Sequence record: OK040170.1 | Direction: 5' to 3' (one strand) | DNA: 64,000 bases | In this document: piece by piece, positions 2,848 through 57,718 of the stretch | How the letters are laid out: every line of letters starts with the position of its first letter | How positions within the stretch are numbered: position 1 is the first letter of the stretch | Program-made: the position numbers and the translations under genes | Notes under the pieces: model-generated | The model's database searches: none | What the model saw: the letters and a program-made list of their open reading frames with translations, nothing else | What the model was told of the DNA's origin: nothing

Positions 2848-4236
2848 CTAGAATAGGTCACGTCGCCAATTCCATTTCTCTGTCTTAACTGCCTTCCCGT
2901 GCATTGCGCTCATCATCAAACTCATGAAAACGTTACCGGTCTCGGTCGCTAATGAGCTCAGAGACTGCCTAGAATCGACGTAGCGCTCACCAAGGCACTT
3001 CACGCAGAAGTTACCATCAACTGTATTACAGAACTGCGGAGAACGCATTACAGTAGGTTTTCCGTAAAACTGCTCAATGTTTGTTGGAGTAACCTGAACC
3101 ATCTTACCATTAACAAGTGCGTATGCCCAGAGATAGCCGGAAGCATTATCTGCATCGATGATGTGCTCGACTCCCAAGGTAGAACCGCAATCGTCTTCTG
3201 CAATGTTGGTGTTCAGGAAGAAGCGAGACAAGAACTTCGCAGCCTCACCACCCAGCGCTGTCAAGAAGCCACGGCTGTAAGAACCATCGATAAGTGAGTT
3301 AGCCATCTGCGGTAAACGTTTGATGTCCCATTGCTCTGCCAGGGAACGATCGATAACCGTGATCTTGTTGGGATCGTTAAAGTCACGTTCGATACCGTGC
3401 ATTACGTAGGACTTCATGCGCGTGATGTCAAAGTCTTTACCGTTCTTCAAGAACCCTTTCTCCGGGTCTTGATCCTGGAAGGCTTTATCCATATCTTTCA
3501 GCTCACCCATGATCTTCGCTACGACAGTTGCATCGTGGAGTTGATCCTTGTATTGCTCCAAGAGCTCGTTACGACGCTTGATGATATTTTTATCGGTCAA
3601 GATCGTGTAAGGAGTAGCAGCAGGGGCGGCCAATTGACACCAGCCAGTTACCGAATAGGCAGCTTGGTAATATTTCTTTTCCAGATCGTCGGTGTAGATC
3701 TTGGTAGCGTCACGCTCTTCCCCTTGTTCAGGAGTAGAAGTAAGTAACTCGGCGATTTTAGATTCGATAGCACCGATCTTGATTTGACCAGCCATGAAAG
3801 GAATCGTAGCACCGAAGCTGTGGCAGAGGATAGTTTGGTTTACTACCACGTTACCGTACCAGGTAGTCAGTTCCCGATCTACGTTTACCAGGTCGCCTTT
3901 GTTCAGTGTGATTTCATCTTTGAACCGGAAGAACGGATAGTTTAACCGGACTTCTTGGAGAGGTTCCCAGGCTTGCGTATCACGATCGAAGAAGACCACG
4001 CGGTCATCGTCTTTGAAGAGTTGATACGGATAGCGTTCGAACGCATAGCGATCAGGTTCGTTGTCGTAGACAATCTTTCCGTAAGGATCCTGAATCATTA
4101 GCTCTTTAGCCGTGATGAGGTTTTCTACCTCAGGACGATTAGGGAGCGCAACCATGGCGAAACATTCTACCATCCATTCCTTGTATTGGTAGGCACCCGC
4201 ACGGAGCGCCTTAAGGAAGTAATCTCGCTTAAGCAT
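2848..4236 (-). CDS. rpoC: Virion RNA polymerase beta' middle subunit (phiKZ gp80-like)
   Basis: EDDCGSTLG and RSPQFCNTVDGNFCVKCLG (beta' Zn site); SYSRGFLTALGG. Start moved to ATG 4236, which has a GGAG RBS. Confidence 0.9.
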   Translation of the reverse strand: MLKRDYFLKALRAGAYQYKEWMVECFAMVALPNRPEVENLITAKELMIQDPYGKIVYDNEPDRYAFERYPYQLFKDDDRVVFFDRDTQAWEPLQEVRLNYPFFRFKDEITLNKGDLVNVDRELTTWYGNVVVNQTILCHSFGATIPFMAGQIKIGAIESKIAELLTSTPEQGEERDATKIYTDDLEKKYYQAAYSVTGWCQLAAPAATPYTILTDKNIIKRRNELLEQYKDQLHDATVVAKIMGELKDMDKAFQDQDPEKGFLKNGKDFDITRMKSYVMHGIERDFNDPNKITVIDRSLAEQWDIKRLPQMANSLIDGSYSRGFLTALGGEAAKFLSRFFLNTNIAEDDCGSTLGVEHIIDADNASGYLWAYALVNGKMVQVTPTNIEQFYGKPTVMRSPQFCNTVDGNFCVKCLGERYVDSRQSLSSLATETGNVFMSLMMSAMHGKAVKTEKWNWRRDLF

Positions 4237-5071
4237 AGACAAACTCCGGGAGAGGCAGGGAAGCAATTTTACGGGTGACGGCTAACAGCTCAGCACCGTT
4301 GTAGTAGAACTCCATCTTAGAAGCCACGTTGGTTCTGACTTCATCTGGAGGAGTATCTGAAGCAATCGCTGAGAACAGAGCGTACTTAGCAATCAGTTCG
4401 CTATCGGTCGGTTTGAGATAACCCAGGAAATAATCCAGGTAGTTATCCATAGGCTCGCCAATAATACCGCCTTCAGTAAAGTAGGTACGGGCAGATTCGA
4501 TTTGGAGTTCCTGAAGAGCCAAACGAACACGCTCAACCAGCAGAGCATCGGCACTAGGGATTTGTTCATCGAATTGATAAGCGAGGTCAGCAAAGGCATC
4601 TTTCCATTGACGAACCAAGGTAGTCGATACGTCTTCGATGAAATCGAGCAAGCGCTCTTGCTGAATCTCAGGACTCACCGTACCGAGGATACTGACTACC
4701 GTTTCTTTGGCTGTCAGACCTTCATCAAGGAGATTACTGAGCGTAGCCATGTCTTCGTATTGGTCAACGCGGTAAAGTGCTTTAAGCGTATCGCCAAGCA
4801 GGAATAACGCATCGCGATAATCCATGTCATCAGCCAGGTAAACGCCAAAGTCTTCGATACCTTCGGTAACAACCTGAATAAGGAAGTTATCCAACTGTTC
4901 ACGGTTGTTGGTGGTGTCGTAACTGTCCATGAACCCGACGAACTGACTGAGGTTCATTTCCATCAATGAGGGGTCTAATTGCATCAAGAAAGGGAGCAAC
5001 CCTTTATATGCCGATACCCTTTCAGGCGAGTTAGTCTTTTCGACGTAACTCATTAAGTCTTCTAAGATCAC
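4229..5071 (-). CDS. Hypothetical protein, overlapping the start of the beta' gene
   Basis: 280-aa ORF, GTG start with GAGGG RBS, 8-nt overlap with the downstream gene. Confidence 0.75.
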   Translation of the reverse strand: MILEDLMSYVEKTNSPERVSAYKGLLPFLMQLDPSLMEMNLSQFVGFMDSYDTTNNREQLDNFLIQVVTEGIEDFGVYLADDMDYRDALFLLGDTLKALYRVDQYEDMATLSNLLDEGLTAKETVVSILGTVSPEIQQERLLDFIEDVSTTLVRQWKDAFADLAYQFDEQIPSADALLVERVRLALQELQIESARTYFTEGGIIGEPMDNYLDYFLGYLKPTDSELIAKYALFSAIASDTPPDEVRTNVASKMEFYYNGAELLAVTRKIASLPLPEFVYA

Positions 5072-5163: not shown

Positions 5164-5577
5164 ATGCCAGTAAGCCGAAAACCTCGTAAGAAAACGAAGG
5201 CGGTGAAAGCTACATCTCGCCCCGAAGTAACCAGGGAAAAAGTCCTGGAACAAATCGAAGTAATCCGCCTGAAGCTGATTGAAATTTATCAACTTCTCGC
5301 TTATTACACCAAGCTGAAAGAAGCCGGGACCGTACCGGAAGACCAGCTGGAGTTATTCTCCGAAAAGATTCATACGATTGGCCAAGAGTTCAACACTTAT
5401 GCGACCAGTCTGGCTAAGTTTAAGAAAGAAGTGGAAGCTTTGGAAATAGGCTCAGACTGCGACCACTTGCGCGAAGTACTTAGTGAGTACCTTGTCAGGA
5501 TGTCAGCTTTCCTGGTGCCAATGGCAGAGTGTACTGATATTATCCTTAAAGTAGAAGGAAAGAAAGATGTCAACTGA
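5164..5577 (+). CDS. Hypothetical protein (basic N-terminus, helical/coiled-coil body)
   Basis: 137 aa, AAGGA RBS, overlaps the next gene start. Confidence 0.75.
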   Translation: MPVSRKPRKKTKAVKATSRPEVTREKVLEQIEVIRLKLIEIYQLLAYYTKLKEAGTVPEDQLELFSEKIHTIGQEFNTYATSLAKFKKEVEALEIGSDCDHLREVLSEYLVRMSAFLVPMAECTDIILKVEGKKDVN

Positions 5578-7312
5578 TTTAACTCCAGGCATGGATGTAA
5601 CCCCGCCTATCGACAACGAACAACCGGCAGCAGAACAAGTTATTGCTCCGGGAGTGGAAGTAGAAAAGAAGAACATCTTCGACGACTACGAAGTCGAAAC
5701 TGATGAACTTCCACCAACTATGCAGGTTGAACAACCAGCGCCGGTTGAGAAAGAAACTCCGGTAGAAATCCCGGAAGCAGATGTACCGGTAAAAGAACCG
5801 GAGCCTATTGAGGATCCTATCTATCCGGTAGAAGACGGTACCCTGAAGATTCAAGGTGACGTCTATAAACTGATCGACTCCAAAACCGGCGTGCAGTCCG
5901 GCATGGTATTGTTGAACACCACGCGTGAAGACTTCAACAACAAAACCGAACGCATGAGCGAAGAAGAAAGTAACAACATGGAAATTCTTCCGTTCCTGCT
6001 GACTGGTACCAGTGCCCAAGACACCGCTTACCCAGGCGAAGGTCTGATCAAAGCTACAACTCGTATCGGTAGCCGCTGGCGTCAATACCTGACCCAGGCT
6101 AACGACTCAACGCAACTGGGCCCTCGTCGCCATCGCTTTGCGCTGACTAAAGAACAAGGCGCAGTAGTAAGTGGCCACGGTGCAGTAGACCTCTTCATGG
6201 CAGGTACTAACCTGGGTCGCTCCGTACAGATCCCTCTGTGGCATTCTGGCTTCTGGGTAACTCTGCGCGCACCAACGGGTGCTTACCTGGCAGAGATCGA
6301 CCGTGCTCTGGCTTTCTCCCGTGAAGAGATCGGCCTGGATACTAACGGTGCTGTTGGTTCTAACGATGCGTTGGTATTCGACGAAGTTCTGCTGGACTCC
6401 GCATTGAAGTTGGTAACCAGCTCTACTCTGCCATTCTCCAAGAACCCATTGGAGCTGAAAGAGTTCATCGCTAAGAATGATATCCCGGTACTCATCTGGG
6501 GTATGGCGATGGCTGCATTCCCTGACGGTACTCCGATTGCAATTCCATGCGCCGAGTGCCACGATGTACAAACTGTTCATGCAAACCCGCTGCGCATGTT
6601 CTGGGTTGATGAGTCTCGCTTCACTGCGAAGCAACTGGCTCACATGGGCCGCACCAATAAAGTCCAAACGAAAGTTGAAGACTTGGTTAAGTACCATGAA
6701 GAGTTCGAAATCCTGAACACTGCTAACTGGGAATACAACGGTCGTGTGTTCTACTTCAACGATCCGTCTGCAGATGAGTACCTGGTACGTGGCCGCGAGT
6801 GGATCAGTTCGATTAACCGCGCACTGTCAGAATCTCTGCGTTCTCAATACGATGATGCTGAGCACCGTGCCGCAGCAGTTCAGTCGGCGCTGTCTACCGA
6901 AGACCTGTGCCGCTTTGCACATTACATCAAAGAGATCAAGGTTCCGTCCCAGGATCACGAAGGTGGTTACTACCTGATTCAGGACATGCCTACTATCATT
7001 GATGTCCTCCGTCAACTGGCCGCAGACGCGAAAGGTTCCATGGAACTGATGGTCGCTATCAACGACTTCGTCAATGACTCCATTGGCGCGTTGGTTGGGT
7101 TCCCTAACGTCGCTTGTCCAAGCTGTGGTAAATACCACTTGAACAAGAAAGGAGAAAGCACGGTTATCGTTCCGTTTAACCCTGCCACTGGTTTTTTTAC
7201 CCTTGCACAACACAGGATCCGCGTCTCGGGTGGAATACCACTGACAAACCTACAGACATTAGGAGTGAGCGCTTTGGTAACCAGGGTCTCGGAGAGCGGG
7301 CTGCCGGTATAA
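5567..7312 (+). CDS. Putative tail/baseplate-hub assembly chaperone, zero-frame product (581 aa)
   Basis: Acidic Pro-rich N-terminus, VQIPLWHSGFWVTL, two CxxC motifs (CAEC, CPSC), T7 slippery run near the 3' end. Function is inferred. Confidence 0.6.
   Translation: MSTDLTPGMDVTPPIDNEQPAAEQVIAPGVEVEKKNIFDDYEVETDELPPTMQVEQPAPVEKETPVEIPEADVPVKEPEPIEDPIYPVEDGTLKIQGDVYKLIDSKTGVQSGMVLLNTTREDFNNKTERMSEEESNNMEILPFLLTGTSAQDTAYPGEGLIKATTRIGSRWRQYLTQANDSTQLGPRRHRFALTKEQGAVVSGHGAVDLFMAGTNLGRSVQIPLWHSGFWVTLRAPTGAYLAEIDRALAFSREEIGLDTNGAVGSNDALVFDEVLLDSALKLVTSSTLPFSKNPLELKEFIAKNDIPVLIWGMAMAAFPDGTPIAIPCAECHDVQTVHANPLRMFWVDESRFTAKQLAHMGRTNKVQTKVEDLVKYHEEFEILNTANWEYNGRVFYFNDPSADEYLVRGREWISSINRALSESLRSQYDDAEHRAAAVQSALSTEDLCRFAHYIKEIKVPSQDHEGGYYLIQDMPTIIDVLRQLAADAKGSMELMVAINDFVNDSIGALVGFPNVACPSCGKYHLNKKGESTVIVPFNPATGFFTLAQHRIRVSGGIPLTNLQTLGVSALVTRVSESGLPV
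7192..7198 (+). other. Putative -1 programmed ribosomal frameshift site T_TTT_TTT
   Basis: X_XXY_YYZ heptamer in the frame of ORF 5567. The -1 frame has TAA at 7177-7179 and is then open to 7683. Confidence 0.75.
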
Positions 7313-7683
7313 TCGAAACCTACCACGGCCTAGGTAGTCTTCAGAGTAAGATAATGTTACGGCGTGCGTACGATCTGGATAACGGGATTTATTCAGAAGC
7401 CTACGACAAAGCGACACCTTACTCTATTATTGAGATGAACCAAGTGGAGGCAGCAGCTAACAAAGGTAAGTTCGTAGAGCTACTGGAGTTCTTCCGTCTT
7501 CATGAAGTGGGTAAGGAGCTAAATATGTCCTTTACTGAATTCATCAATCTCGATAACGACATAATCGAAACCATTAAGTTATGTTGCACGCGTTGGCGTT
7601 CAGAGGATGATAGTGCCACCCGTGAAGCATTGCAGAAAAGTGGGATCGACCCTAGGACGGGTAACCCTATTAAACCCGCGTAG
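7198..7683 (+). CDS. -1 frame C-terminal extension (predicted 705-aa fusion); includes the ORF called at 7354
   Basis: 52 sense codons (YPCTTQDPRLG...LQSKI) join the slippery site to ATG 7354, which lacks a clear SD. Confidence 0.7.
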   Translation, partial: YPCTTQDPRLGWNTTDKPTDIRSERFGNQGLGERAAGIIETYHGLGSLQSKIMLRRAYDLDNGIYSEAYDKATPYSIIEMNQVEAAANKGKFVELLEFFRLHEVGKELNMSFTEFINLDNDIIETIKLCCTRWRSEDDSATREALQKSGIDPRTGNPIKPA

Positions 7684-7747
7684 CGATAATGCCGCTTGGA
7701 AACAGGCGGCTAATCCTATGTAATAAACATACCTCAAGGAATTTGCC

Positions 7748-8410
7748 ATGAGCAAAAACAGACAAGACCGTATGCGTAGCCGTATGGCTGAAGCAAACGA
7801 ACTTTCGGATCAAGCCTCCAAAGTAGAGCAAGACCGAGTCAATACCCGCGAAGTACCGGAAGGCACCGACAGCGCTGCCAGCGTTGCTCAGGACTCTCCG
7901 ATTGGTGTATCTGTACAAACAGCTGCCCCTGAGCAAACAGCTCAGGTTAAGACTGTTGCTGACGTTTACGCCGGTAAGAGCGACACTGTTCGTTCTATCA
8001 TTATCCATCTGGAAACCTACACGCAGGAAATGGCGCCGGGTCGTTACATGACTCCTGACCAAATCCTGAGCAATCAGAAAATGCTGTTCCGCAATCTGCA
8101 GCAACTGGTTAACCTGCCAGACGCCGGCGAGTTCGCTATCTGCTTCAGCCGCCTGCTGAAACTGGTAAACGAAAACCGCAACAAAGCATTCGCTATCAAC
8201 ATGGTGATGCGTAACATGTCTGCGATGCCTCAGGGCGATAACCAGCTGAACAACTACCGTTTCTTCCTGGACACGGTAATCGCGTTCTCTGATCCGGCAC
8301 ATCGCCGTCTGAACATCAAAAAATGGAACCTGCAACAAGCGTCTCTGTTTGCCCTGCCGGCATTCCGTGATCGCCTGGCCGGATTCATTCGTGAGATCTG
8401 CGGCGAGTAA
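7748..8410 (+). CDS. Hypothetical protein
   Basis: 220 aa, AAGGA RBS, strong codon bias, TATGT motif upstream at 7717. Confidence 0.85.
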   Translation: MSKNRQDRMRSRMAEANELSDQASKVEQDRVNTREVPEGTDSAASVAQDSPIGVSVQTAAPEQTAQVKTVADVYAGKSDTVRSIIIHLETYTQEMAPGRYMTPDQILSNQKMLFRNLQQLVNLPDAGEFAICFSRLLKLVNENRNKAFAINMVMRNMSAMPQGDNQLNNYRFFLDTVIAFSDPAHRRLNIKKWNLQQASLFALPAFRDRLAGFIREICGE

Positions 8411-17798: not shown

Positions 17799-18951
17799 TA
17801 TTTTTTCCTAAGTCGATAATAGATTGATCGTAACCAAAACCTGCCAGTGGATCAGGTGGCATTTCTTCGTAGTGGTACAGAGGAACTGCAGACCCTACTC
17901 CACGTAGACGCTCGTAAACATCCTTCTCAATGAACCAGCATAATTCGTAAGTACAAGGGTGAATCAGCGGATACGAGTAGAAGTTACAGAGGTCACGTTG
18001 TTCTGGAGTAACACGATAATAGTTGTTACTCTTAACCCGAATCTCTTCACGCGTTAACCGTGTTTTGTTAACGATTTCCAAGTCCGGATTAAATAGAGCA
18101 GTCGTTGTGTTGAATGCTTCAATCAACAACGGGTCATTATAGATAGCCCCGACGCTGTTAAATTGTACGGTCACTGTATCATTGCTGCGATCGTAGTTAT
18201 CGTCGTTATCGAAGTTGAATGTACCGCCCTGAGGGTTAGTACTAGGGAACGAATAACCAGTCCCGGCTATCTGCTGAACAAAGCGACGAGTTGGGTCGAG
18301 AATTAAGCGATAAACTCGGCAGGTATAATCGATACAGTTACGATAACGATTTCGTGGCCATGGAACCATTTTCTTAGTACGGATGTTTTCCATGTAAGAT
18401 TCCCAAACATCGAATAAACGAATGAATGGGTTACCGTCCATGTTAGTAAACGATGCCGTTAACTGAAAAGCTCCGCGAATACGATACGGGCCATCTGCCA
18501 TAGTCCACTGCTCACCCAAAATACCTTCAGGTGACGTATAAGTACCAACGGCGTTATCAGGGAAACCAGACAGTGATTTCAGGCCGTTAGTCAGGATACT
18601 AATAAATGCAGCCTTAGGATTGACGAGAGGAGTCGAATAACCAAAAGCCGGGTCGACACTACCATTAGGGTCTAAATACGCTCTAATGGCCGATGGGATC
18701 GTAATTGGGTCACTACTGATCAACGGAGTCAGGTGTCTATCTTGTGTAACATTATCGCGATGTAGGTTAAGGTCAGGCTTTGTAAAGAATGTCAGACCAA
18801 CCTGGTCTTTATTCGCCGCAACTACCGCACCGCGAGCACGATAATTATAACCAAAAAAGTTTTCGTAGACCTGACCGTACTTGGAACCAAGCCCGCCAGC
18901 CCTGAAAACCATATCTAGATTTTTACGAAGCGTATCGTCGTAAGACGCCAT
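17791..18951 (-). CDS. Baseplate/tail-tube-initiator-like virion protein (phiKZ gp88-like)
   Basis: 386 aa; VGLTFFTKPDLNL, IDYTCRVYRLILDP; overlaps the wedge gene; synteny. Confidence 0.6.
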   Translation of the reverse strand: MASYDDTLRKNLDMVFRAGGLGSKYGQVYENFFGYNYRARGAVVAANKDQVGLTFFTKPDLNLHRDNVTQDRHLTPLISSDPITIPSAIRAYLDPNGSVDPAFGYSTPLVNPKAAFISILTNGLKSLSGFPDNAVGTYTSPEGILGEQWTMADGPYRIRGAFQLTASFTNMDGNPFIRLFDVWESYMENIRTKKMVPWPRNRYRNCIDYTCRVYRLILDPTRRFVQQIAGTGYSFPSTNPQGGTFNFDNDDNYDRSNDTVTVQFNSVGAIYNDPLLIEAFNTTTALFNPDLEIVNKTRLTREEIRVKSNNYYRVTPEQRDLCNFYSYPLIHPCTYELCWFIEKDVYERLRGVGSAVPLYHYEEMPPDPLAGFGYDQSIIDLGKNNG

Positions 18952-47754: not shown

Positions 47755-47786
47755 GTGTCAGCTATTCAGCTTTTCTTTTTTTTTGC

Positions 47787-55841: not shown

Positions 55842-56990
55842 ATGAGTACTATCTTTGGCCACGATACCATCAAGGCTGAAGTTATCGATTTAATCAATAA
55901 GAAGAATGCTCAGTTTGGTGCAGACTTTACCGAGGACAACCTCGAAGTCACGTGGCTCAGCTACGATGCATTAGACCGTCGTCAAACGATGATGACGAAA
56001 GATCTTTCTGGTCGATACTTTGGTTTACGTGATATCCGCTTCTTCAAACGCGATTACGATCTCCTCTTTAAAGGGATCGACGTAAAGATCCAGGTAGGTT
56101 CAGGCTACAACAACCGCGCGGTGCTCAAAGAGCTTTCTCGTGCATACGGGTTACCTCCATTCGAAGATTACGACTTTGCTCCAGGTCTACTGGACATGTC
56201 TATCGAAGTAGGTGACCACGAGCAATTGATCGAATGGCCATTTGCTGACTCCAGCTGGGGTTGGACAGGGACTTGTCGATTCAAGCTCCGTAACATGAAG
56301 ACCTCGCTGGAAACGCTTATTCCAGACGGTACATTGGATCGATTCCATCCAGAAGAGCTGAAAGGCGTCTTCTACGAATTGGTCAACGGTACGTTGAGTG
56401 GATTGGATTACCCAGAATACTTCGACCTTGGTAAGATCATTACGATCACTGATCTCGAAGGTTTGGAATACCCAGACGATATCGACTTGGGTGTTATTAT
56501 CCATACCACAGATCTGGAAGGTCTGGAATATCCGCCGATGACTGACATCAGCAAGTTCCAAACTAGCGATCTCCAGGGCTTGGAATACCCTCCTGCTTAC
56601 GACTTGACTAAACTCAATGTCTTTGCATTGGCCGGTCTGGATTATCCAAGTGGTACTGGCGCAGGTCAAACTTCTGCGTACAGCACGACCTACCCGCTGG
56701 ACTTCTCTGATTACCAACGTGCAATCCGTACTTATCGTTTAGGCGATACGATCACGGACGTTAACTTGGTGAACGTCATTGTTAGCATGATCCAGTCTAA
56801 CTGGACTAAGCTGCAGGGTGAGACTAACAAGTCTAACCTCTTTAACTCCTTCTTGAATGCGACCATCCAGAGCATTGAACAGAAACGTTCGATCCATGGT
56901 TGGACTATTTCGGTCGGCGTTAAGTTGAGTTCTCAACGCGTACTTCGCGGCAATGCCGTGCTGCGTTACGACATCCAATCTGAATATTAA
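55842..56990 (+). CDS. Virion structural protein with five tandem LxGLxYP repeats
   Basis: TLSGLDYP, DLEGLEYP (x2), DLQGLEYP, ALAGLDYP at about 19-20 aa spacing. Confidence 0.75.
   Translation: MSTIFGHDTIKAEVIDLINKKNAQFGADFTEDNLEVTWLSYDALDRRQTMMTKDLSGRYFGLRDIRFFKRDYDLLFKGIDVKIQVGSGYNNRAVLKELSRAYGLPPFEDYDFAPGLLDMSIEVGDHEQLIEWPFADSSWGWTGTCRFKLRNMKTSLETLIPDGTLDRFHPEELKGVFYELVNGTLSGLDYPEYFDLGKIITITDLEGLEYPDDIDLGVIIHTTDLEGLEYPPMTDISKFQTSDLQGLEYPPAYDLTKLNVFALAGLDYPSGTGAGQTSAYSTTYPLDFSDYQRAIRTYRLGDTITDVNLVNVIVSMIQSNWTKLQGETNKSNLFNSFLNATIQSIEQKRSIHGWTISVGVKLSSQRVLRGNAVLRYDIQSEY
56386..56650 (+). repeat. Five tandem peptide repeats (LxGLxYP)
   Basis: Visible at both DNA (gatctNgaaggtYtggaata) and protein level. 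Confidence 0.85.
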
Positions 56991-57001
56991 TGACGATAAT
57001 T

Positions 57002-57029
57002 AAAAGTAGGGGCTTCGGCCTCTACTTTT
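57002..57029 (+). terminator. Intrinsic terminator
   Basis: AAAAGTAGGGGC-TTCG-GCCTCTACTTTT followed by more T. Confidence 0.8.
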
Positions 57030-57073
57030 TTATGCTTACTTATTTTTTTATATTAAATCTTCCAGAGGGTCAT

Positions 57074-57718
57074 ATGGGTGATACAAAATTCAGGGTTATC
57101 GGCATCGACCCAGGGAGCCGTTGTTTCGGTTTGTCAGTAATTGAATACGACTTAATCAACATGACCGAAACGCTGGTTTACGCAACTACTTTCAAACCAG
57201 ACCCTATTCTTCATGAACGTCATCCGTACATGATCCTCGGGGAGCGCGGCGCACGTCACCGTCTTTGCGAAGACTTTGTCGTAGAGTCTCTCAATACGTT
57301 CAAACCGCATCTCGTCGTCTGCGAATCTGCCTTCCTTAAATTCAAAGCGGTTAACGCTTACCGTTCACTGATCGAAGGTATTGTCACCATTCGCCGTGCT
57401 TTACAACGTTACGACGACACGATGCATTTACTTACCGTTGAACCAAGTGCTGCTAAGAAAGCAGTAGGTGCACGTAACTCGGATAGTCCGGATAAAAAGT
57501 TAATCGTTCGCCTGGCAATAGAGCGAATGAAAACCATGATCAAGAATGTTGCCATTTCTGATCTGGATGAGCACGCAGTCGATGCGGTTGCAATTGGCCA
57601 CTGGGCTATGGATAAATGGCTTAGTGAAATGAAATGTATTATTGAAGGAGTGGATGCATGTTCTTCGTCTTCGAAGGAATGGATGGGGCAGGAAAAACGA
57701 CTTGTCGGGATGGTGTAG
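57074..57718 (+). CDS. ruvC: RuvC-like Holliday junction resolvase
   Basis: VIGIDPGS, VVCESAF, EHAVDAVAIG catalytic D/E/D. Start moved to ATG 57074 (GAGGG RBS) because the longer ORF spans a terminator. Confidence 0.9.
   Translation: MGDTKFRVIGIDPGSRCFGLSVIEYDLINMTETLVYATTFKPDPILHERHPYMILGERGARHRLCEDFVVESLNTFKPHLVVCESAFLKFKAVNAYRSLIEGIVTIRRALQRYDDTMHLLTVEPSAAKKAVGARNSDSPDKKLIVRLAIERMKTMIKNVAISDLDEHAVDAVAIGHWAMDKWLSEMKCIIEGVDACSSSSKEWMGQEKRLVGMV

Follow-up and report, generated by a model that had tools for sequence, protein, structure and literature searches.

A probable −1 frameshift in core gene cg18, apparently shared by the whole family of phiKZ-like jumbo phages

Two consecutive open reading frames (ORFs) in a stretch of 64,000 nucleotides (nt) from sequence record OK040170.1, in the following called the window, raise the question whether they represent two genes or a single one. 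ORF1 (5567-7312, plus strand) encodes 581 amino acids (aa), and ORF2 (7354-7683, plus strand), which appears in GenBank records as a coding sequence of 109 aa, follows downstream in the −1 frame. Near the 3' end of ORF1 lies a run of seven T residues, at which ribosomes had been proposed to slip back by one base in the original prediction, made from the letters of the window alone. Based on a comparison with related loci, we conclude that ORF1 and ORF2 are probably one gene recoded by a −1 ribosomal frameshift, a reading in which considerable, if not complete, confidence can be placed. The recoding site appears to be family-wide and not to have been reported previously.

Over positions 5400-7800, the window matches Serratia phages 2050HW and BUCT660 as well as Pectobacterium phage ParM-25 with 100% identity; the values are 99% for Moabite and 78.5% for Totoro. 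The window phage belongs to the 2050HW/Moabite-type Serratia jumbo phages with genomes of approximately 275 kb (genus Moabitevirus, Chimalliviridae). A tblastn search with ORF1 matched 215 phage records, all of them phiKZ-type jumbo phages and PHIKZ077 among them, and the protein was assigned to phrog_4585 (E 1.8e-143). The phiKZ-like nature of the phage, as originally predicted, was borne out by both the nucleotide matches and the tblastn search. In the supplement of Prichard et al. (PMC10299810), phiKZ gp077, Goslar gp081 and RAY gp267 are listed as Chimalliviridae core gene cg18 with the annotation "hypothetical protein". According to tblastn, alignment, synteny and this supplementary table, ORF1 is cg18, the homologue of phiKZ gp77.

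The site within ORF1 reads ACT GGT TTT TTT ACC, with position 7192 in the third codon position. The slippery heptamer T_TTT_TTT (7192-7198, plus strand) consequently lies in the X_XXY_YYZ phase and encodes the Phe543-Phe544 pair, which is invariant among the relatives. The −1 frame is closed by a TAA at 7177-7179 and open from 7180 onwards; beyond the heptamer it forms an extension of 161 codons and a stop codon at 7681-7683 (7198-7683, plus strand), of which the annotated ORF2 represents the 3' two-thirds. Counted from the site, 52 extra codons of the −1 frame pass before a potential start codon (ATG, GTG or TTG) is reached, namely the ATG at 7354. The zero frame continues behind the heptamer for 37 codons and a stop, so that the stretch from 7199 to 7312 (plus strand) would be a dual-coding overlap with the start of the −1 extension, both frames being open and conserved. 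Rare codons are found in this zero-frame tail, namely AGG, ATA, CTA and GGA, as had been noted before, and TTA as well. All of these elements of the original prediction, i.e., position and phase of the heptamer, extent of the −1 frame and codons preceding the ATG, could be confirmed, and the predicted products of 581 aa and 705 aa (544 + 161) are strongly backed by the comparative evidence described below.

T runs of this length are rare in the window. Only four runs of at least seven T were detected in the 64 kb, and A runs of at least seven do not occur. The other three T runs, a T8 at 2827 and a T8 at 47776, both in intergenic spacers, and a T7 at 57043, were rejected as recoding sites, as they are either intergenic or followed by a −1 frame that shuts after 10 codons. 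The T7 at 57043 follows a GC-rich, terminator-like hairpin at approximately 56998-57030, and the ORF at 56990-57718 therefore probably starts further downstream.

To cover the relatives, 14 named phages were chosen (the window phage, Totoro, KpLz-2_45, FBKp24, PCH45, SPLA10, Ea277G, DT01, phiKZ, PhiPA3, 201phi2-1, SPN3US, RAY and Goslar). Together with 78 usable IMG/VR loci from an ORF1 profile search, a total of 92 loci was obtained, which fall into 68 clusters; the extensions of different clusters are at most approximately 60% identical. With respect to ORF1, ORF2 occupies the −1 frame in all 14 named phages. No stop interrupts this frame at the site in any of the 92 loci, including 78/78 from IMG/VR, and it continues behind the site for 150-195 codons (median 165), whereas the +1 frame is typically shut within about 10 codons of the site. 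Since T runs are rare in the window and site, phase and open −1 frame recur in every one of these loci, the arrangement goes beyond chance.

The heptamer itself is of the type T_TTT_TTY in 61 of the 68 clusters, with 40 clusters having T_TTT_TTT and 21 having T_TTT_TTC; in RAY the site is a T8 run. The codon preceding the site ends in T in 63/68 clusters, even though it encodes 11 kinds of residues and T makes up 33% of the four-fold-site background. The first Phe of the site is encoded by TTT in all 68 clusters, compared with 41% TTT for Phe elsewhere in these genes. Positions 1-6 remain T and position 7 is T or C, which matches the needs of a tandem re-pairing of tRNA-Phe after a −1 slip. 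Moreover, all 73 −1 peptides of the IMG/VR loci with a Phe-Phe site matched the Hidden Markov Model (HMM) of the extension, with E values from 9e-64 to 1.5e-5. The alignment across phiKZ-like genomes that had been suggested along with the original prediction thereby gave the expected picture of a conserved heptamer and an open −1 frame.

Further evidence is provided by the part of the −1 frame which lies upstream of any start codon. Within the 14 named phages the first ATG, GTG or TTG of this frame is located between +8 and +85 codons from the site, while the length from site to stop is constant. The lengths of 93-182 aa that gene callers assign to ORF2 result from this shifting position of the start codon. 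Totoro carries a TTG where the window has the ATG at 7354. In phiKZ the opening of the −1 frame lies 12 nt ahead of the heptamer and the zero frame is terminated 11 codons past it, and behind the site 85 conserved codons of the −1 frame pass before a start codon appears. When the 65 codons past the ORF1 stop were compared in phiKZ, PhiPA3 and 201phi2-1, 0 stops were counted in the −1 frame and 4-11 in the other phases, and local BLOSUM62 scores between the phages reach 74-120 in the −1 frame and 13-30 for other frame pairs. A tblastn search with the extension aligned from residue 1 in relatives which are 36-49% identical, as did the alignment of the −1 peptides. Likewise, the matches of phrog_12109 to the ORF2 region start 17 codons upstream of the ATG at 7354. 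The family of the extension comprises 1,237 clusters at 50% identity.

The annotation of the locus in individual genomes varies. In phiKZ, gp76.4 (3195-3412 of the locus extract) spans the last 80 of 165 open −1 codons, and approximately 220 nt of conserved coding sequence are left "intergenic". In RAY, the annotated start of gp266 (3053-3601 of the locus extract) is an ATG that precedes the slippery site and lies within gp267.

The zero-frame tail behind the site is conserved as well. Over the 36 codons after the site, identity between distant pairs amounts to 45% in either of the two frames, zero and −1, neither of which contains stops, whereas the +1 frame over the same codons shows 30% identity and contains stops. 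Third-position identity to Totoro is 0.83 in 7187-7276 compared with 0.32-0.73 along the rest of ORF1, and the overlap includes a 46-nt stretch without any change between the two phages. In Klebsiella phages with 48-50% identity, the tblastn alignments of ORF1 extend as far as residue 577. Judged by these substitution patterns, the overlap is dual coding with conserved synonymous sites. Homologues in which both parts are fused in frame were not detected: those of ORF1 measured 513-614 aa, and the best 150 of the 1,237 extension clusters 93-174 aa.

From these patterns we infer the following course of translation. Most ribosomes would stay in the zero frame and stop at 7312, yielding the protein of 581 aa (approximately 64 kDa), whose C-terminal half would be a Cys4 domain resembling that of T4 gp26. 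A minority would pause with two tRNA-Phe on TTT TTT, slip back one base on T_TTT_TTT (7192-7198) and read the −1 frame up to 7683. The resulting long product of approximately 78 kDa would consist of the common 544 residues and the 161-residue extension, which is predicted to form a small helical domain attached by a flexible linker. The slip would fall at a domain boundary, namely the end of the part shared with gp26 of T4-type phages (see below), four or five residues ahead of the position at which gp26 stops. As neither a stimulatory RNA structure nor a Shine-Dalgarno-like element is evident, a low and fixed ratio of the long to the short form is expected, and the slip rate may be low, constitutive and set by the heptamer alone.

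Several results weigh against this reading. Stimulatory elements, i.e., a 3' hairpin or pseudoknot or a 5' Shine-Dalgarno-like sequence, are common, albeit not obligatory, at bacterial −1 frameshift sites, and none could be recognized here. The 132 nt after the site fold like their shuffles (z −0.06), a consensus fold of seven relatives reached −4.7 kcal/mol with one covarying pair, and Rfam gave no match after the site. In the 68 clusters the minimum free energy of the 60 nt after the site was −11.7 kcal/mol compared with −12.0 kcal/mol for the controls (p = 0.97), and Shine-Dalgarno-like motifs upstream were found in 6/68 clusters, i.e., at background level. The statement of the original prediction that no convincing 3' stimulatory structure is present holds for the single fold, the consensus fold, the Rfam search and the survey of the 68 clusters. 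Moreover, seven clusters carry weaker sites, namely G_TTT_TTT in three of them and G_TTT_TTC, C_TTT_TTT, T_TTT_ATT and T_TTT_ACC in one each; all seven still hold a shorter T run. The Phe-Phe dipeptide at the site is invariant at the protein level in the ORF1 alignment, which explains part of the T run without any recoding. In the accessible published data no junction peptide, no ribosome footprints and no second band were found, and the ATG at 7354 could start ORF2 of the window independently.

This last point belongs to the simplest alternative, according to which the locus consists of two ordinary genes, ORF2 being started at its own codon, the T run reflecting merely the Phe-Phe pair and the upstream −1 frame remaining untranslated. 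It is in line with the existence of the ATG, at which the annotators of Moabite marked a short ribosome-binding site, with the invariance of Phe-Phe at the protein level and with all GenBank records examined, which annotate two coding sequences and never a joined one. Two independent genes, however, would hardly account for a start codon that is TTG or missing in relatives and wanders from +8 to +85 codons, for a −1 stretch ahead of any start that is free of stops and conserved as protein, or for the synonymous T retained before the site in 63/68 clusters. Besides, ORF2 is never found in another frame or at a distance from ORF1. We consider it very unlikely that the two ORFs are expressed in this manner. 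An artefact, i.e., a sequencing error in the homopolymer or a recent mutation that split a gene of 705 codons, might be suspected insofar as homopolymers are error-prone in some sequencing chemistries. The same arrangement is nevertheless present in ten near-identical independent records and in 92/92 loci, the zero-frame tail after the site is itself open and conserved, and no unsplit homologue occurs among those examined. Because both frames are conserved, the records are independent and an unsplit homologue is missing, a sequencing error or a decaying gene can be ruled out for practical purposes.

A different origin of the same long protein would be transcriptional slippage, in which the RNA polymerase of phage or host would insert one additional U into a share of the transcripts while copying the T run, so that the ribosome does not have to slip at all. 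One extra base in the homopolymer (T7 in the window, T8 in RAY) leads to the same change of frame, the phages use their own multisubunit RNA polymerases, the genes of which lie nearby, and a ribosomal stimulator was not found. The distribution of the sites, however, favours the ribosome: 21/68 clusters have only T6 followed by C, seven are weaker, and T runs as short as T6 are poor substrates for polymerase slippage. The conservation of positions 1-6 along with a free position 7 points to tandem re-pairing and not to a premium on run length. In addition, the T8 runs elsewhere in the window are intergenic and longer runs are avoided in ORF1. Transcriptional slippage is regarded as unlikely, though somewhat less so than two ordinary genes, and ribosomal frameshifting remains the explanation that we prefer.

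With regard to the function of the common part, the fold of ORF1 was predicted with AlphaFold2. The model has a predicted local distance difference test (pLDDT) score of 76 and a predicted template modelling (pTM) score of 0.75; residues 1-80, which are acidic and predicted to be disordered, and residues 565-581 are disordered in it, and the Phe pair of the site is part of a helix formed by residues 539-553. In the cg18 family the N-terminal 80-200 residues (5567-5806 in the window) have an acidic composition with many Pro, Glu, Ala and Val residues, are predicted to be disordered and differ strongly between phages in both length and sequence; SPN3US has approximately 100 additional residues here. 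Neither a sequence search nor Foldseek against the PDB provided a match of ORF1 to a solved structure. In BFVD, Foldseek matched ORF1 to members of its own family and, with E 9.8e-5 and a target TM score of 0.56, to a model entitled "Baseplate hub assembly protein, bacteriophage T4-like".

For a profile comparison, gp26 of nine T4-type phages was aligned (alignment A7). In hhalign, residues 324-549 of ORF1 (alignment A4; 6536-7213, plus strand) matched residues 79-208 of gp26 with a probability of 90.3% and an E value of 1.4e-6 over 129 columns, and in this register both Cys pairs and the C-terminal Phe-Phe of the two proteins are aligned. The Cys pairs of ORF1, C328/C331 (6548-6559) and C517/C520 (7115-7126), correspond to the two CxxC motifs that had been pointed out in the window, the second pair being CxxCG. 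They are invariant or nearly so and align with invariant pairs of gp26; the four Cys residues probably form a zinc site. According to a review of the T4 tail (PMC3004832, table 2), gp26 is a hub assembly chaperone. By analogy, the short and long products of cg18 may act in the assembly of the baseplate hub or in tail initiation. Taken together, the profile and model matches suggest that ORF1 is probably a distant relative of gp26 which has acquired a larger N-terminal part and a recoded extension. As T4-type gp26 ends 3-4 residues after Phe-Phe, the slip site lies at the end of the shared domain. A cg18 homologue in MW749006.1 (9961-11043), 27% identical to that of Pseudomonas phage DT01, is annotated as "putative baseplate hub assembly protein". 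This record belongs to the 200-kb phage vB_BspM_AgentSmith, which bears a Bacillus label; a chimallivirus-type core gene under a Gram-positive host is unexpected.

The suggested assembly role has to be seen together with several further results. The link to gp26 is modest and not robust: a smaller ORF1 alignment (A2) reached a probability of only 3% against the gp26 alignment, the larger one compared with a single gp26 sequence 33%, and neither the Pfam HMMs nor tblastn connected ORF1 with gp26 or T4, respectively. In a proteomic study of phage Churi the homologue of gp077 was among the early-expressed proteins, and this early detection fits a late tail function poorly. In the infected-cell co-fractionation data of PMC10449902 (supplement), phiKZ gp77 and its PhiPA3 homologue were detected, while ORF2 products are not listed. 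The paper on the Goslar virion structure makes no mention of gp81 or gp82. The findings for Churi, the co-fractionation and Goslar fit a factor which is not part of the virion; a role in hub assembly is neither proved nor excluded by them. In the tables of PMC10449902, PHIKZ077, PHIKZ078 and PHIKZ084 carry the value 2, PHIKZ083 the value 3 and most neighbours the value 1; these values may represent numbers of elution peaks.

The original prediction had gone further and had placed the gene product among the lambda G/GT-type tail assembly chaperones, or alternatively among hub assembly chaperones. Membership of the lambda family found no support, as no chaperone family of Pfam, PHROG or NCBIfam was matched and Foldseek returned tail assembly chaperones with E values of 0.6 or worse. 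The hub part of the claim, by contrast, is moderately favoured by the hhalign and Foldseek results given above, and the structural comparison that had been recommended likewise retrieved the gp26-like named model and not the tail assembly chaperones. Searches with both parts of the gene in Pfam, NCBIfam and PHROG led exclusively to families of unknown function. A comparison of ORF1 with gp51 gave no more than a trivial CxxC match.

In view of the aligned Phe-Phe, the T4-type genes themselves were inspected for a corresponding site. Six of the nine keep Phe-Phe or Phe-Leu (TTC TTT, TTC CTT or TTT TTC), and in the other three the Phe is followed by a different residue or the motif is missing. 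A matching frameshift in T4-type gene 26 was rejected for 8/9 genes, which have no in-phase slippery heptamer at Phe-Phe, and in those of the six with Phe-Phe or Phe-Leu other than S13 the −1 frame is shut at these codons. The exception is Cronobacter phage S13, in which GAT TTT TTC forms an in-phase T_TTT_TTC; here the −1 frame, as assessed at the gene end, is open from 30 nt before the last base of the gene and covers the heptamer. At the ends of gene 26 (17840-17890 in one locus extract), a 1-nt overlap of its stop with the start of gene 25 places the latter in the −1 frame in four of the nine T4-type sequences.

The AlphaFold2 model of the extension is poor overall (pLDDT 62). It shows about 45 disordered residues that would serve as a linker and, at residues ~90-147, a helical domain with a pLDDT of 81-87. 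The extension matched no family and, by sequence search and by Foldseek against the PDB, no solved structure. T4-type gp51, gp25 and gp26 were tried as counterparts and rejected, as the profile comparison revealed no resemblance.

Comparison of the flanking sequences shows that the neighbourhood of ORF1 is not a tail module. On the minus strand, genes encoding a virion RNA polymerase beta subunit (gp80-like, 2848-4266) and a gp79-like protein (4229-5071) are found. They are followed on the plus strand by a gene of 137 aa (5164-5577), which takes the position of gp78 in the relatives, overlaps the start of ORF1 by 11 nt with its 3' end and gave no match in family searches. Further neighbours encode a protein of 220 aa of unknown function, a GNAT protein and a DNA polymerase/RNase H-like protein. 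The layout gp80-gp79/gp78-gp77 is kept in phiKZ, PhiPA3, 201phi2-1 and RAY; in SPN3US and Goslar, gp78-gp77 are retained and the flanks differ in part. As originally predicted, ORF1 does not adjoin a tape-measure gene, and it is not located between tail tube and tape measure.

Two observations concern the phage and its surroundings and not the frameshift. The gene of an I-TevI-like homing endonuclease (1426-2772) adjoins that of the virion RNA polymerase; it is 80% identical to the copy in Moabite, and its flanks are ~99% identical, and because of this difference it looks like a fast-changing or exchanged mobile gene. Furthermore, Pectobacterium phage vB_ParM-25 (ON375847.1) matches Serratia phages 2050HW and BUCT660 by 100% over 2.4 kb, and, judging from this stretch, the three seem to be essentially one virus under two host genera.

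The gene cg18 is common to all phiKZ-like (Chimalliviridae) phages, a heavily studied family, and its function is listed as unknown. A literature search, which was thin on subscription journals, revealed no report of a frameshift in cg18 and no function for it. The mechanism suggested here is of a known type, yet it concerns a family for which no earlier report of recoding was found, and the site is conserved across the whole virus family. Provided that the frameshift occurs, the locus is annotated wrongly in more than 200 genome records, which give ORF2 arbitrary starts (93-182 aa), and for this reason the domain of the extension has probably been missed from core-gene lists. A family-wide domain that is at present mis-annotated or "intergenic" would then join the core proteome. 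The likeness to gp26 represents the first functional lead for cg18. More tentatively, it is conceivable that all nucleus-forming jumbo phages make a second cg18 isoform by an unstimulated −1 slip and apply the G/GT principle to a gp26-like hub chaperone. Thereby the short form might hold the hub/tape-measure complex, and the rare long form might recruit a partner in a fixed ratio; this model is speculative and we would not yet rely on it. It would extend the two-form assembly factor made by fixed-ratio frameshifting to a lineage and a protein family for which no such report was found. Whether the site is recoded could be examined directly in existing proteomic and ribosome-profiling data from infected cells.

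Among the known systems, dnaX of Escherichia coli resembles the locus in being a bacterial −1 frameshift on a homopolymer-like heptamer that yields two products with one N-terminus (tau and gamma). Frameshifting in dnaX is assisted by a Shine-Dalgarno-like element ahead of the site and a hairpin behind it, occurs with high efficiency and gives the shorter product. In cg18, on the contrary, neither stimulator was found and the product of the frameshift would be the longer one. With respect to the heptamer, the E/E+E' pair of the myovirus P2 is comparable, as its −1 slip takes place on a T-rich sequence of the T_TTT_TTG type; the P2 proteins, however, are small and encoded in a tail operon, and no homology between them and cg18 was detected. 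T4 gp26, the putative relative by descent, agrees with ORF1 in the alignment of its residues 79-208 to residues 324-549, with the Cys pairs and Phe-Phe in register. It differs in its size of ~208 aa and in its location, as gene 26 adjoins genes 25, 51, 27, 28 and 29 and ORF1 lacks this neighbourhood. The counterpart in terms of design is lambda G/GT, the site of which requires no RNA stimulator and sets a low, fixed ratio. Sequence and fold of cg18 show no similarity to the tail assembly chaperones, the common part, with 544 residues, has roughly four times the size, the gene lies beside the homologues of gp79 and gp80 instead of between tail tube and tape measure, and the heptamer is T_TTT_TTY. 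What both systems would share, as far as the anatomy of cg18 indicates, is a pair of N-coterminal products, the long one arising when the ribosome slips by −1 at a heptamer located shortly before the first ORF ends, and both probably provide assembly factors and not parts of the virion.

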